Translations under genes and position numbers: made by a program
Notes under the pieces: model-generated
Database searches by the model: none
Seen by the model: only the letters and a program-made list of their open reading frames with translations
Told to the model about the DNA's origin: nothing
Shown here: positions 1,211 to 58,651 of the stretch, piece by piece
How positions within the stretch are numbered: position 1 is the stretch's first letter
Layout: every line of letters starts with the position of its first letter
From: Asterias rubens
Taxonomy: Eukaryota
Reading direction: 5' to 3'
NCBI RefSeq assembly: GCF_902459465.1
Contig: NC_047083.1
Span: 1,798,001-1,862,000 of the forward strand
Length of the DNA stretch: 64,000 nt

Positions 1211-3045
1211 ATGCCGACTTTCTTTTCCTACTCGGTGAAAGCCCACCAAATGGTGATGACGATTTTGACGTCACAGACCCGTCAGGGGAGTCGGACACGA
1301 GCCATGATGACGTAGACATGAGGATCAAAAACATTCCCGACAGAGCATTCAAAAATGCGTCCGGGTTAAGACAATTGGATATTCGCGGCAACAAGATCAC
1401 CGGGCTCCAGCCCGGAAGCTTCGTGGGATTGCAATTTCTTGAGATTCTGTCACTGAAGGACAACCGTTTGAGGGCGCTAGATAGTGACGCATGGTGGGAA
1501 CTTCAAAGCATCAGAAGTCTCATCCTGTCTGGAAACAATCTCCGGAGCCTTCCGGAGCAAGGATTCAGGAACAGTTCCGGATTACTCGAGCTGGACCTCG
1601 GTGGTAACCTGCTCGAGGATCTCTCACCAAGGTCTTTGAGTTGGCTCCCTCAGCTGCGATTCCTGAATCTTTCACATAACCGCCTGGTTCAGGTTCCGGG
1701 AGGCCTGTTTTCGGATCTTGTTGAGCTCCAGGAACTTTATCTGGATGGCAACAGACTTGAAGACCTACCAGTTGGACTCTTTGATCAGAATTCCTTACTG
1801 GAAGTTGTGTCTCTTCGGAATAATAGACTCCATCGCATTCCGGAGCTCCTTTTCTACCATCAGGTCAACCTGAGGGAACTGGATCTATACGGTAACCACC
1901 TGATCGAACTGGGTAACTCAGCCTTCGCGACGGTACCTGCCCTCCGCTATTTAGACATATCACACAATATCATCGAGGAATTGAATAATGGAACCTTCCA
2001 GAATTGTTCGAATCTGCTTAAGCTAGACGCCAGCTTTAACAGGATCAGGGAAGTCAGGATTGGTACCTTCGGGAAGATACCTTCTCTCCAGGAACTCATT
2101 CTATCGAACAACAACATATCCTCGATTACTCCTGCCGCCCTAGCAGGCTTGAGAAACCTTGCCGAGTTAGATCTTACAAACAATGCACTGCGGCACCTGC
2201 GGGCCTATACGTTCTACGGACTCGAAGAGCTGATCTCATTGCAGCTTGATAACAACAGTGTGTTAGAGGTTGAACCAGAAGCTTTCAGCGTTGGCCTCTT
2301 CAGCTCCTCCTCTAAGCTTACCTGGTTGTACCTCAGGATGAACCTCCTTAGTAACTTGACCTCCAACATGTTTCAAGGTGTACCGTTCCTTAAGATGTTG
2401 AACCTGGCAGACAATAAGATCGACACCATAGGACCATCTGCTTTTCGTGGACTAAGAAGCTTGACTGCCCTGAGTCTCAAGGGAAACCACCTCTGGAGTC
2501 TCGAAGAGAGAGCCTTCTCAGGGATGGTCCGCCTGAAGAACTTAGACCTGAGTGGCAACTCTCTACATCGTATCGATGAGGGCGCCTTCCAAGGACTGCG
2601 TTTTCTGCAGGATCTTAACATGGAGGAGAACGAACTTGACGAGACAACCGCTGATTGGCTGGTGGGTCTGACGTCACTCTCTCAACTGAATCTGAACCGA
2701 AACCGGTTTGCCAGGTTACCACCGTTTGTGTTGACGAACCTACGGAGGTTACGTCAGCTGTTTGTGGCGGGAAACATTCTCGACACTTTCCGAATCCCCG
2801 AACTCGATCGGCCGGTCGGGTTGTCTCGACTGGACATTGCAGATAACAACTTACAGACGATAGAGGGCAGTCTGCACGGTATACTCGAGGCAGACAGCTC
2901 TGTGACCATGTTTGGAAATCCTTGGAATTGTGACTGTGGACTGACGTCAGACTTGATGGAGATGACGTCACTCGGTGTTCAATTTGAAAAAGAGAACATC
3001 ACAATATGTGAAACTATCGCGGGAAAGCAGCTTCAAAATATAAAG
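1211..3045 (+). CDS. Large internal exon of an LRR + serine-protease-homolog gene: about 21 typical-class LRRs and an LRRCT cap
   Basis: ORF 1318-3081 has about 21 LxxLxLxxNxL repeats spaced about 24 aa apart, followed by NPWNCDC...ICET (LRRCT). Acceptor tttattccag|AT at 1210/1211 (phase 1) keeps the frame open upstream of the ORF-track ATG. Donor AAG|gtgagt at 3045/3046 (phase 0). The 5' exons lie left of the window. Confidence 0.9.
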
Positions 3046-3568
3046 GTGAGTTCTGCAATATTATTTAGCAATAAAACTTAAAAACAAAAAGGCAAAAAAC
3101 TATAATTTTGCTGACACAAGTTATACACACAAAACAGTGTATAATTCTTGTGCAAAAAGCAAAGTTTGTACCTTTCTTTCAGTGAGTAACATTCCCCTAT
3201 TGATGGTAGGGCTTACAAAAAAAATGGAGACCCACGACAACAAAAACCGGTCTCATTATCAAAACAAACAAATAAAATACCTATCTTAAAATGTTTATGG
3301 TTGTGCAATCGCCACGAGTACATTTTTAGACATGCGATATGCAAGACTATTATTTATCATCATCAAAGTTATTGTTTTTAACATGAATCAAAAATCAGTG
3401 CTCAGTATTATCAATAATAGCCCATTGTAAATATTGACCAGACAGTAAAGTTGTTTTAACGTAAGACAAAGTTACTTTGTACACAACAAAGAAAACTTCA
3501 GGACATCTTCTTGACTTTCTTTCATTTGGAACCACTGTTTGTTCATGATATTAATCTCCACATTACAG

Positions 3569-3732
3569 ACAAGGCTTTTGCTGACCGAAGCAGCCAGCGA
3601 ACACGAGGCTCGTTGTGGATCGCAGCTGAGGGTGGCTCCCCTCATAGACAGGACCGCGGCTCGGCGGCTCGGTGACTCCACGGACTCCCAGACCGCTGCT
3701 CGTGTCGTAAGACGATGCAAGATCCCTGCAAT
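3569..3732 (+). CDS. Linker exon of the LRR-SPH gene (TRLLLTEAASEHEARCG...RVVRRCKIPA)
   Basis: Acceptor cattacag|ACA (phase 0) matches the upstream phase-0 donor. Donor GCAAT|gtaagt (phase 2) matches the next acceptor. The frame is open throughout. Confidence 0.8.
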
Positions 3733-3962
3733 GTAAGTGTTAAAAATCCCATACTTTCTGATTAGTCTGTCAAGGACACAAAAAGATGATCTTCTCGTAT
3801 AGGGAACTCGCCAAACTCCAACAAGGGGATATGAACACCAAGCTGGCAACAGCCAATCTTTAACGTCTATGAATTGACAAATCAAGAAATTGTAATCCAG
3901 TATAAACTAGACGACAAAACATGTACTTATTCTAGTCAATGTGAAAATCAGATGTTAGCTTT

Positions 3963-4027
3963 TAGGATTTGAACCTACAACCTTGTGATTGCAAGTCGTG
4001 CAGTCTAACCACTTGACCACGGTGACC
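3963..4027 (-). mobile_element. tRNA-derived SINE head or tRNA pseudogene fragment, in the last intron of the LRR-SPH gene
   Basis: The reverse complement GGTCACCGTGGTCAAGTGGTTAGA...GGTTCAAATCC has Pol III A and B boxes but no 3' acceptor-stem strand. Confidence 0.65.
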
Positions 4028-4243
4028 TAGTGCTCATGTTTGGCACATGAGAACAAGGACAATACAAGAAAAGGGAAAACAAAATAAAGACTGGGATGCT
4101 CCATGCAAAGTGATTAAAATTCAAAATAAGGCGGTAAAAAACCTGGGCTATAGAAAAAGTTGATTGTGTACCCTTGATCAATCTCTAATGAAACCAAGTC
4201 AAGTTCTTACAAACTTGTTTTTCTGCCCGCTTTTCCTAAAAAG

Positions 4244-4982
4244 TATCTCCAAAGGTAACGGGACTTGGCCCTGGCACGGCATCGTCTGGGACTCAAACAC
4301 GGACACTGCTCTCTGCAATGCCGCCCTCATCGGTAAAGATTGGGCAATCACAACACTGCGCTGCCTGCAGCCGATAGAGGGCGAGCTGTCGAAGATGCCC
4401 GGTTTCTTCGACGACATCGTGAGGCGGGGAAAAGACAGCCTCATCATGGCACCGCATGGTCTGACGGTCCGACTCGGCAAGAGTAGACAACTACAGGACC
4501 GTGAACCAGGCGAGAAATCCTACCACATCATGAATATTCATGTCCCTGCGAACGACAGAGGATCTGGTTTGGACCGGCCCATTCTGCTTCAGTTCGTCAC
4601 CATGGCTACTGTGACAAAGACAATTACCCCAGCATGCATTGCAAACTCTCCACTCAAATCCAAGAGGGCGCTTGTCCTGGGATGGGGAACGAAACGAGAA
4701 CAGACACGAGAACTCCTCCAAAGCTCCCGGATGAAACTAGATCCATGTGACTTCACCAATGACGTCACTGATACCGCCATTTTCTGCGGTGTCCGAGACA
4801 GAGGGAAGCCCATACAGTTTTCGATGGAGGGCAATATGGGTGGAAACTTGGTACTGAAGAGAGGGCGTGGGGACTGGATACTTCTGGGTATAGGGTCTAA
4901 CATGACCCCAAAAGGTCAAAGTGTTTTCGTTGATGTAGGCAAGTACGCCAGCTGGGTTTACAAGAAAACCGAAGTTCGGTAA
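4244..4982 (+). CDS. Terminal exon of the LRR-SPH gene: trypsin-fold domain lacking catalytic residues
   Basis: Acceptor cctaaaaag|T ATC (phase 2). Chymotrypsin-fold motifs are recognisable: WPWH, LCNAALIGKDWAITTLRC (for CGGSLI..WVLTAAHC), PACI, FCG, GNMGGNLV (for GDSGGPLV), W.LLGIGS and VFVDVGKYASWV. Stop TAA at 4980-4982. Confidence 0.85.
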
Positions 4983-4994
4983 GGAGACTAGAAC

Positions 4995-5032
4995 CATAGA
5001 GTTATATATAAGAACTTATATATAACTCTATG
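4995..5032. mobile_element. 38-bp perfect hairpin with an 8-bp target-site duplication (hAT-like mini element)
   Basis: ACTAGAAC|CATAGAGTTATATATAAG-AA-CTTATATATAACTCTATG|ACTAGAAC. Confidence 0.8.
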
Positions 5033-5056
5033 ACTAGAACGCATGAAGTTAAGACC

Positions 5057-57400: not shown

Positions 57401-58126
57401 CATAAAAACGAAATTCTAATTTTACATGTTTTTTTAATCTGGGAAGATTTGGAATCAAGAACTCAAGTTGTTTTTATATTTTGTTACAGAAAACTTCAAG
57501 ATTGAAATTTCAGAAGCTCAAAGAAATTACTAAAGGCTTTGAATCAGTTCATCATGATTGCAAGAAAAAACTTTAACAATACATCGACAATTTCGTTGAG
57601 CATTGAATGTGGAAGCGAATTATTGTTGGTGTATTTGTTTTTGTTTTTCAGGAGCATCCCGTAGTGCCCAGAGACAAACAAGATCAATTGAGTACCAGGT
57701 CTGACAAGTCTTGTTGTTGTTGTTGTTGTTGTTGATTTTGTTGTTTACATTTCTGTTACATTCTGCTATACAAATAAATTATTTTACATTGCAACTCTAA
57801 ATAGTATTGCTATATTCACTTTAGGCCAACTCCCTTATTTTGATTTATTGAAAATACGTGTCTAATAGAAGTTTGTTAACAAGTTCTGGATTATACTACA
57901 TGCCGTTTTCGAAAACAAGGTTGAACATGGGCTTCGTCCAATTGCTTGAAGCCCTATATTAGGAAAGCACATGCTTTCTAAATAACTGACAGAGCCCAAT
58001 CCCAATTCGCCGTGGTTTCGAAAACGGCCGTACACATTCACCGTCTGTCTCAGAATCATTTCCACCCATCACCCACAGAGGGCGGTCGAGGTAAACAAGA
58101 CAAAAAAGAGAGGAAACTTGACTTAC

Positions 58127-58473
58127 ACTTGGAATGTTCTCCTGTGTGCACACCTTCTCAGCCAGGAGCCGGTCTCTTATCTCCCAAGCAAATATGGACG
58201 GACACTCTCTCTTGTAGTGGGCGACTCGGCTGACCACCAGAGGGGTGGCTACCCGGGGCTTACTGCCCCCGATAGCCCTGGGTCGGATGGAACCCGTCTC
58301 GTAGTATCGGCCTAGTATCTTGGAGACGCATCCATTGGACACCTGGAGGATACGGGAGATATCGCAGGGCCTGGCCCCACTGTGGGCGAGCTCTACGATC
58401 TTCTGGCGGGTGGTGTCAGGTAGGGGGCGGCCATTGACAAACATTCCGCCGAGTTGATTGACTCCACTATGAC
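58127..58473 (-). CDS. Pax6: Pax6 paired-domain exon ([10 protein letters not shown]...ENIPS)
   Basis: Translation gives a paired domain with the Pax6-specific ILQVSN (I42/Q44/N47). Acceptor catacag|GT CAT (phase 1), donor CCAAGT|gtaagt (phase 0), 347 nt. Confidence 0.98.
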
Positions 58474-58477
58474 CTGT

Positions 58478-58651
58478 ATGCAAATGAGACATGTGACAAT
58501 GAGACTTATGCAAATGAGACATGTGACAGTTACTCTTATGCAAATGAGACATAGCAATAAGACGTATGCAGATGGGACATATCAATAATTATACATTTGC
58601 AGTTAGATACCTATGCAAATGAGACATGAAAGGTACATTAATGCAAATGAG
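58478..58651 (+). repeat. Degenerate tandem repeat of about 30 bp carrying five perfect ATGCAAATGAG octamer units
   Basis: ATGCAAATGAG at 58478, 58508, 58538, 58613 and 58641, plus a degenerate ATGCAGATGGG at 58566. Confidence 0.9.

Follow-up and report, generated by a model that had tools for sequence, protein, structure and literature searches.

How can one gene come to join a solenoid of leucine-rich repeats (LRRs), a typical recognition module, to a protease domain without its catalytic residues, and what might such a protein do? The question is raised by a locus near the start of a 64,000-nucleotide stretch of the starfish Asterias rubens (contig NC_047083.1, positions 1,798,001 to 1,862,000 of the forward strand), hereafter the window. 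A first-pass annotation, made from the letters of the window, had read the locus as three exons encoding a Toll-like LRR solenoid fused to a catalytically dead trypsin domain. Here we establish the gene and its splicing, the architecture and secretion signals of its product, the loss of its catalytic residues, its phyletic spread and the purifying selection that acts on it. The three exons of the window are coding exons 2–4 of one gene, whose relatives occur in starfish, sea urchins, a hemichordate and amphioxus. Its product is best explained, on the analogy of better-known proteins and with fair confidence, as a secreted, non-catalytic extracellular binding or adaptor protein built of two modules.

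The LRR and protease exons form one transcribed gene

Transcript contigs of four public runs, which come from four studies, were placed on the 5.95-kb locus that covers the gene. Three runs (X1, X9 and X2) each provide one contig of 3.2–3.5 kb that runs across all four coding exons and lacks the introns, and a 2.9-kb contig of the fourth run (X6) joins exons 1–3, with exon 4 on a separate contig. One of these runs, X2, comes from a related species with ~96% identity, exhibiting 66 differences across the 1.8-kb LRR exon. Because single spliced contigs join all four exons, the LRR and protease exons are parts of one mRNA. The spliced coding sequence (CDS) translates without any difference into the 1001-residue RefSeq model XP_033645709, which bears the automatic name “toll-like receptor 6 isoform X2” and which a search with the LRR exon recovered at 100% identity, together with its trypsin domain (PF00089). 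The locus has two RefSeq accessions, XP_033645709 and XP_033645710; isoform X1 uses an upstream in-frame ATG in a 5' exon, and its only change is 16 additional residues (MTGQTESTRARINRNI) before the signal peptide. The transcript contigs reach 185–598 nt upstream of coding exon 1, and at least one 5' untranslated region (UTR) exon must therefore lie beyond the examined stretch. Searched with the profile of the S1 (chymotrypsin-fold) domain, the A. rubens genome gave one strong match, the rest being weak matches to ordinary trypsin exons. The locus is a real, transcribed, single-copy gene of A. rubens.

Residues 1–90 are encoded before the window, in coding exon 1, whose donor splits codon 90 (Table 1). 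Within the window, the junction 3045/3569 falls between codons and the junction 3732/4244 splits a codon (AT/T) to give Ile756; contig-to-genome alignment sets the former two bases leftward, the usual AG/AG alignment ambiguity. Coding exon 2 contains an acidic spacer that follows the N-terminal cap (LRRNT), the 21 LRRs and the first three cysteines of the C-terminal cap (LRRCT), while the 54 residues of coding exon 3 hold the fourth LRRCT cysteine (Cys717, within 3608–3622), a linker modelled with low confidence, and Cys751 (within 3710–3730).

Much of the first-pass annotation is borne out by these data and by those described below. Its three exons, with intron phases 0 and then 2, have canonical splice sites and are joined in spliced contigs; its roughly 21 LRRs, LRRCT, linker and chymotrypsin fold agree with the Pfam matches, a repeat count of 21, the cysteine pattern and an AlphaFold2 (AF2) model; the degenerate motifs TTLRC, DRPILL and GNMGGN are present as reported; and the lack of a transmembrane or TIR segment is seen both in hydropathy and in Pfam scans. 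The soluble, secreted fusion of an LRR solenoid with a catalytically dead chymotrypsin fold that it described stands. It had named separate transcripts for the LRR and protease exons as the result that would speak against a fusion, and the contigs spanning both contradict it; the 5' exon and signal peptide that it called for were recovered as coding exon 1. Two points need correction, as the gene does not start at 1211 and the fourth LRRCT cysteine sits in the small middle exon.

Architecture of the predicted secreted protein

From the N to the C terminus, the 1001 residues comprise a signal peptide, an LRRNT, 21 LRRs, a four-cysteine LRRCT, a linker of ~40 residues and the S1 domain. The sole hydrophobic segment spans residues 6–24 and is followed by RASA/LP. 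In eight family members examined for hydropathy, no second Kyte-Doolittle peak above 1.6, and hence no transmembrane helix, was found beyond the N-terminal signal sequence; because this N-terminal peak is the only one in all eight, it is read as a signal peptide without a membrane anchor. A Pfam scan of the exons found no TIR domain (PF01582 or PF13676), and none appears among the precomputed Pfam domains of XP_033645709. The mature chain contains 11 N-glycosylation sequons and 15 cysteines, and the protein is predicted from these signals to be secreted and N-glycosylated. The number of cysteines in the mature protein is thus odd. Cys355 (window ~2005–2007), which lies in an LRR in the context NCS, is shared by the three starfish genera, with no counterpart in the other classes; it would have no disulfide partner, and covalent dimerisation might be possible.

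The LRRNT contains Cys39, Cys43, Cys45 and Cys77 in a CPxxCxC...C pattern with an unusually long insert. Pfam LRR_8 matches the LRR exon in ten stretches (E = 5e-101), and the repeats follow a period of 24 residues, with one repeat of 29. Across eight family members, the Asn ladder of the LRRs is invariant, as are the LRRNT cysteines and the four LRRCT cysteines (Cys663, Cys665, Cys689 and Cys717). The Pfam LRRNT and LRRCT models gave no match on the caps, which are assigned from the invariant cysteine patterns only, and the middle exon has no Pfam match. In a full-length AF2 model built from six sequences, the predicted local distance difference test (pLDDT) is ~80–95 for the LRRs and 22–29 for the region of exon 3, and the S1 part is poor; values stay below 50 over residues ~683–765, i.e., from the end of the LRRCT to the S1 domain. 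The ~40-residue linker is probably flexible. A complex prediction of the LRR part (residues 30–700) with the S1 part (residues 750–1001) scored 0.15, with the mark at 0.34, and was counted neither for nor against an intramolecular contact.

A family in invertebrate deuterostomes

Relatives were collected with an S1 profile searched exhaustively against 1.84 billion representatives, where LRR/dead-S1 proteins were the top single-domain matches; the hits were then scanned with Pfam and their names looked up. The full architecture is present in the starfish Asterias amurensis, Patiria miniata and Acanthaster planci, in the sea urchins Strongylocentrotus purpuratus, Lytechinus pictus and two Diadema species, in the hemichordate Ptychodera flava and in several Branchiostoma species, as well as on one intron-free transcript contig (P0008, SRR32924703). 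The ortholog of S. purpuratus has the accession XP_030845376. A full-length alignment of eight members is collinear from Met1 to the C terminus, and the hallmark of the family is a signal peptide, a CPxxCxC LRRNT with a long insert, ~21 LRRs, a four-cysteine LRRCT, a linker and a C-terminal S1 domain that lacks the triad. A maximum-likelihood tree groups echinoids with asteroids, places Ptychodera next and leaves amphioxus and SRR32924703 outside, and thereby reproduces the species tree; SRR32924703 sits on a long branch, and its placement is unsure. The layout of four coding exons (signal peptide and LRRNT/LRRs/linker/S1) is common to both Asterias species, L. pictus and Ptychodera, and the amphioxus gene has nine. 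By these sequence comparisons, the proteins make up an unnamed family of invertebrate deuterostomes (Asteroidea, Echinoidea, Hemichordata and Cephalochordata), with apparent one-to-one orthologs across starfish, sea urchins, hemichordate and amphioxus over more than 500 million years. The collinear alignment suggests that the amphioxus genes are orthologs, and, if they are, both the fusion and the loss of catalysis are older than the divergence of Ambulacraria from Cephalochordata.

Other searches added no further member. A word-indexed search with the C-terminal 302 residues found Patiria only, because the S1 domain diverges too fast, and a search with the full-length family profile was swamped by generic LRR proteins and gave no new member bearing PF00089. 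Other large proteins with a C-terminal S1 domain in the profile search proved, by Pfam, to be polyproteases or CUB, LDLa, Ig or CLIP proteins, none with an LRR fusion, and were set aside. Among AlphaFold DB clusters, ranks 14 and 25 are A0A7R8X204 and A0A7R8WXT1, two proteins of ~1250 residues named “Peptidase S1 domain-containing protein”, which align structurally over the LRR region and part of the S1 region. They may be independent fusions of LRRs and S1 in another phylum.

The family has no name of its own, as the first-pass annotation had supposed. Its members carry conflicting automatic labels (TLR6, TLR3, TLR2, artichoke-like, IGFALS, uncharacterized), with artichoke-like on the Patiria and Lytechinus members and IGFALS on those of amphioxus and the hemichordate; these automatic database names are regarded as misnomers. 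No study of the family was found in the full-text literature searched, a set outside which most subscription journals lie, and one A. rubens proteomics paper contained nothing on the protein.

Fold of the S1 domain and loss of its catalytic residues

Pfam Trypsin (PF00089) matches coding exon 4 with an E-value of 6.2e-11 over profile positions 10–220. An AF2 model of the S1 domain, computed from a 44-sequence alignment, reaches a pLDDT of 88 and a predicted template modelling (TM) score of 0.89. In Foldseek it aligns at a TM-score of ~0.7 with thrombin, APC, plasmin and many other S1 domains, with HGF and masquerade among the neighbours; structural matching does not discriminate among S1 relatives. 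In the model, the position of the 60-loop carries an insertion of two short helices, which follow the TTLRC strand. A profile of six family S1 domains matches protein C, FXI, plasma kallikrein and MASP-1 in the PDB at 1e-19 to 1e-13, and the family domain is no closer in sequence to serine-protease homologs (SPHs) than to other, active S1 domains. The only clusters that an ESM Atlas feature search yielded were those of generic trypsin and of “inactive serine protease”, with scores also reached by chance.

In the starfish protein, each residue of the catalytic triad is replaced within a recognisable motif (Table 1). Across the family, His57 and Ser195 are gone in all 13 S1 domains and Asp102 in 12, Branchiostoma floridae being the sole member with an Asp in that column; the full triad is found in none of the 13, as against 24 of the 31 unrelated S1 domains that served as controls in the same alignment. 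The residues that replace the triad vary by lineage, and no alternative catalytic set is conserved. Just upstream of the EGNMGGN span, Met occupies the Cys191 column and Phe the Asp189 column. The Cys191–Cys220 bridge is absent and the Cys42–Cys58 and Cys168–Cys182 bridges are kept (Cys780, Cys796, Cys924 and Cys937 are invariant), as are Gly193 and Gly196 of the oxyanion region in starfish. Asp194 is lost in starfish and most other members, with Asp kept in P0004, P0127 and P0276. No Arg or Lys precedes the Ile16 position in A. rubens (KIPA-IISK), Patiria (KKHA-FVSK) or Acanthaster (ENHP-VVSR). Judged from these residues, the domain belongs to the S1 group by fold only and cannot be expected to act as a canonical serine protease. 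Because every member examined lacks the triad, it was probably already dead in the common ancestor of the family.

Linker Cys751 and the equivalent of chymotrypsin Cys122 are both present in starfish, amphioxus and SRR32924703, and both missing in sea urchins and Ptychodera. This co-occurrence fits a tether of the Cys1–Cys122 type, and a Cys751–Cys887 disulfide probably joins the linker to the S1 domain in starfish, with its counterpart in amphioxus and SRR32924703.

Table 1. Positions of the gene, its protein modules and the S1 motifs (window coordinates unless the contig is named)
Feature	Position	Strand	Details
Coding exon 1	Contig NC_047083.1 1796876–1797159		Outside the window, 1124–841 bases before window base 1; ATG, signal peptide, LRRNT; mapped upstream
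Coding exon 2	1211–3045	+	Last 2 bases of codon 90, then residues 91–701; acceptor ttccag, donor gtgagt
21-LRR array	1366–2892	+	Residues 142–650; LxxLxLxxN starts 142, 166 ... 627
LRRCT, first part	2917–3045	+	NPWNCDC with Cys663 and Cys665, then Cys689; from the Cys pattern
Intron, phase 0	3046–3568	+	GT..AG; missing from single contigs of four runs
Coding exon 3	3569–3732	+	Residues 702–755 and 2 bases of codon 756; acceptor cattacag, donor gtaagt; present in spliced contigs
Intron	3733–4243	+	GT..AG; splits codon 756 after its second base; holds a high-copy repeat; skipped by the same contigs
Coding exon 4, S1 pseudoprotease domain	4244–4982	+	Residues 756/757–1001; acceptor aaaaag; stop TAA 4980–4982
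TTLRC (for TAAHC)	4350–4364	+	His57 to Arg795; Cys42–Cys58 pair (Cys780, Cys796) kept
LDRPILL (for (N)DIALL)	4569–4589	+	Asp102 column is Arg, with Asp one residue earlier; HMMER alignment to protein C and column table
TPACI	4626–4640	+	Cys887, equivalent of chymotrypsin Cys122; column table
EGNMGGN (for (Q)GDSGGP)	4827–4847	+	Ser195 to Met, Asp194 to Asn

Selection on the two modules

The ratio of nonsynonymous to synonymous substitution rates (dN/dS) was computed by the Nei-Gojobori method from the spliced CDS of A. rubens and A. amurensis, with a codon bootstrap for the LRR and S1 parts. It is 0.40 for the whole CDS, 0.46 for the LRR array (bootstrap 0.27–0.84) and 0.20 for the S1 domain (bootstrap 0.08–0.45). 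In this recent comparison the S1 domain is more constrained than the LRR array, and the ratio points clearly to purifying selection on the pseudoprotease. The moderately high ratio of the LRRs, together with the fast change of the S1 domain over the long term, would suit a partner that co-evolves with the protein.

Comparison with known LRR and S1 proteins

Toll-like receptors share an LRR ectodomain with LRRNT and LRRCT caps with the starfish protein, which differs in lacking a transmembrane helix and a TIR domain and in ending with an S1 domain. Both segments were looked for and found absent, and identity as a Toll-like receptor is rejected. The best LRR matches among solved structures are, in order, IGFALS, LRIG1, TLR3 and LGR4/5; the top PDB sequence match, IGFALS (7wrq), covers residues 158–471 of the LRR exon at E = 6e-56, a generic similarity to a protein without the S1 domain appended here. 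IGFALS, LRIG1, the TLR3 ectodomain, LGR4/5 and LRRC15 resemble the starfish protein in forming a secreted or ectodomain arc of an LRRNT, ~20 LRRs and an LRRCT, yet none has an S1 domain, and their identity of 26–33% is at the level of the repeat class. The long extracellular LRR arrays of Drosophila artichoke and chaoptin are the best non-family matches to the family profile, but they have 1200–1500 residues of LRR and no protease domain, and the match spans about half of the query. Artichoke and chaoptin are linked to the membrane by a glycosylphosphatidylinositol (GPI) anchor or a transmembrane segment.

On the side of the S1 domain, the closest parallels in manner of working are SPHs such as masquerade, PAMR1 and the CLIP-SPHs (e.g., Anopheles SPCLIP1/CLIPA30), which are likewise secreted multidomain proteins whose C-terminal S1 domain (TM-score ~0.7) is catalytically dead and acts by binding. 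They carry N-terminal CLIP, CUB or EGF modules, whereas an LRR solenoid occupies that place here, and no CLIP domain (PF12032 or PF18398) was matched in any part of the starfish protein. With Met at Ser195, the starfish domain falls among non-catalytic SPHs, a class that speaks for SPH-like working and not for SPH descent. CLIP-SPHs are reported to need proteolytic activation (PMC6901238). The starfish protein differs from them in having no site for it. HGF/MSP and haptoglobin also have a dead S1 domain on a non-enzymatic secreted protein, and HGF is among the fold matches; they differ in bearing kringle/PAN or CCP modules, not LRRs, in being cleaved at an activation site, and in being vertebrate families without specific sequence affinity to the starfish domain. 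In HGF/MSP and haptoglobin, the dead S1 domain serves as a protein-binding head. The starfish protein is an LRR-headed serine-protease homolog, already present in databases as unstudied and misnamed predictions.

Repeats and neighbouring sequence

In all four runs, contig depth is enormous and rearranged joints are many over two stretches of the locus, one from ~106 bases before window base 1 to window position 291 and the other at 3675–4072. Because of this depth and these joints in four runs, the two intronic stretches are regarded as high-copy interspersed repeats. A tRNA-like stretch (~3965–4030) in the second repeat is not called as a tRNA by ARAGORN. Four bases past the stop codon, at 4986–5040 (+), lies a perfect 18-nt inverted repeat (4995–5012/5015–5032, with a 2-nt spacer) flanked by the 9-bp direct repeat GACTAGAAC. 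The palindrome is missing from this 3' site in the A. amurensis ortholog, and the element resembles a small hairpin insertion in the 3' UTR, specific to the lineage and accompanied by a target-site duplication. At 57959–58585 on the minus strand, an open reading frame contains a complete paired-box domain (PF00292, E = 8.7e-67), which we take to be that of a Pax6-like gene; the LRR/dead-S1 gene lies ~53 kb from it, on the opposite strand.

Discussion

Both LRR arcs and pseudoproteases are familiar as binding modules. The protein is probably best understood, by analogy with such modules, as a secreted, non-catalytic binding or adaptor protein with two of them. The LRR arc would hold one ligand, and the folded, selectively constrained pseudoprotease would hold a second partner through its degenerate cleft or through exosites, such that the whole protein could bridge, present or sequester partners outside the cell. 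The role of the S1 domain in this proposal is suggested by other dead S1 domains that work in this way, namely the HGF/MSP beta-chains, haptoglobin, masquerade and CLIP-SPHs. Because it has neither an activation site nor Asp194, the protein would work as a single, uncleaved, zymogen-like chain, and in starfish, amphioxus and SRR32924703 the disulfide between the linker cysteine and Cys122 would pin the linker to the S1 domain. Several points weigh against the proposal. The binding roles of both modules are drawn from analogy. The full-length AF2 model places the S1 domain without confidence. The S1 domain is only 21–26% identical between starfish and sea urchin or acorn worm, compared with 36–37% for the LRR exon, and this fast divergence between classes implies no strong conservation of whatever surface it uses. 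The limits of the family toward protostomes and vertebrates are provisional, and SRR32924703 and the two AlphaFold DB entries with LRRs and S1 may bear on them.

Two alternatives would deny that a non-catalytic fusion protein exists at all. That gene prediction has joined a neighbouring LRR gene to a decaying protease gene is barely conceivable, since assembled single transcripts from four studies cross all the junctions, the same fusion is found in at least 11 species, including the intron-free contig of SRR32924703, and the dN/dS of the S1 domain is 0.20; only the general frequency of chimeric gene models speaks for such an artefact. It is also very improbable, although less so, that the S1 domain still hydrolyses some substrate through non-canonical residues. 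Purifying selection on the domain, the intact fold of its model and the two oxyanion-region glycines retained in starfish would agree with a cryptic enzyme, but His57 and Ser195 are replaced throughout the family and Asp102 in all members but one, the replacements vary among lineages, and Asp189, the Cys191–Cys220 bridge and, in starfish members, Asp194 are lost too.

The remaining alternatives concern what the protein binds. It could serve as a cue in development, in the nervous system or in the matrix, much as Slit, Tsukushi or artichoke do: a secreted LRR ligand or co-factor whose dead protease forms a receptor-binding head as in HGF/MSP. Such a role would fit the stable single-copy orthology and the conserved exon structure, both typical traits of developmental genes, and the occurrence of the transcript in several independent transcriptome studies. 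Outside the family, the LRRs match artichoke, chaoptin and Slit-type proteins best, and the S1 model has HGF and masquerade among its structural neighbours. The likeness to artichoke, chaoptin and Slit is, however, generic for LRRs and covers about half of those longer proteins, and fast divergence of the S1 domain would be unusual for the ligand of a conserved receptor; by analogy, we consider such a role a serious but minority possibility. A special case of the two-module binder is the immune recognition adaptor, in which the LRRs would bind microbial or damage ligands in the coelomic fluid and the dead protease would recruit or regulate a complement-, clotting- or melanisation-like cascade, as arthropod SPHs do. 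Stable single-copy orthology over more than 500 million years, unlike the expanded immune receptor families of echinoderms, weighs somewhat against membership in such fast-expanding repertoires; the protein also lacks a CLIP domain and a site for activation cleavage, starfish and most other members have lost Asp194, and the structural match of the S1 domain does not single out any relative. The LRR region nevertheless resembles the ectodomains of TLR3 and TLR13, as well as IGFALS, and the strongest profile matches of the S1 domain are coagulation and complement regulatory proteases (protein C, FXI, kallikrein and MASP-1). In mosquitoes, the LRR proteins LRIM1/APL1C and the dead CLIP protease SPCLIP1 are reported to cooperate around TEP1 (PMC3764210). 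The dN/dS of the LRRs, 0.46, is also fairly high. On balance, an immune adaptor is unlikely, if well short of negligible. More doubtful still is a self-contained carrier whose LRR arc would cradle its own S1 domain, the pair serving as a single composite surface or as a decoy for protease inhibitors or substrates. Vertebrate LRR carrier subunits do hold cargo, IGFALS with IGF-IGFBP3 and CPN2 with carboxypeptidase N. IGFALS is the closest solved LRR sequence to the starfish protein (7wrq) and the tether between the modules is only ~40 residues long; yet the IGFALS similarity is generic, and no model put the S1 domain on the LRRs with any confidence.

Returning to the two-module binder, the observation made in the first-pass annotation is confirmed and its interpretation is partly supported. 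The cascade-adaptor role that it proposed is plausible by analogy with arthropod SPHs. Its epithet “Toll-like” reflects generic LRR similarity only, as IGFALS and LRIG1 rank above TLR3 and both the transmembrane helix and the TIR domain are missing, and the link that it drew to the expanded immune repertoire of echinoderms does not hold for a gene that is single-copy in A. rubens and has one-to-one orthologs in a tree that mirrors the species tree. A bolder and rather improbable idea is that the protein represents an ancestral deuterostome module, an LRR sensor covalently wired to a dead protease that nucleates or gates a complement- or clotting-like proteolytic cascade, or a receptor. In such a module a single chain would correspond to what insects divide between separate LRR and SPH partners, and vertebrates would since have lost it or split it past recognition.

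The importance of the finding is moderate until a partner or a phenotype is known. The contradictory automatic names would mislead counts of Toll-like receptors and of IGF-system genes in invertebrate deuterostomes. The survival of a fixed fusion of LRRs and pseudoprotease under selection in lineages from amphioxus to starfish points to an extracellular function that has been conserved. Several of the species that carry the gene are laboratory models. With its single copy and its presence in such species, the gene offers a tractable case for the role of a dead protease tethered to a recognition solenoid.

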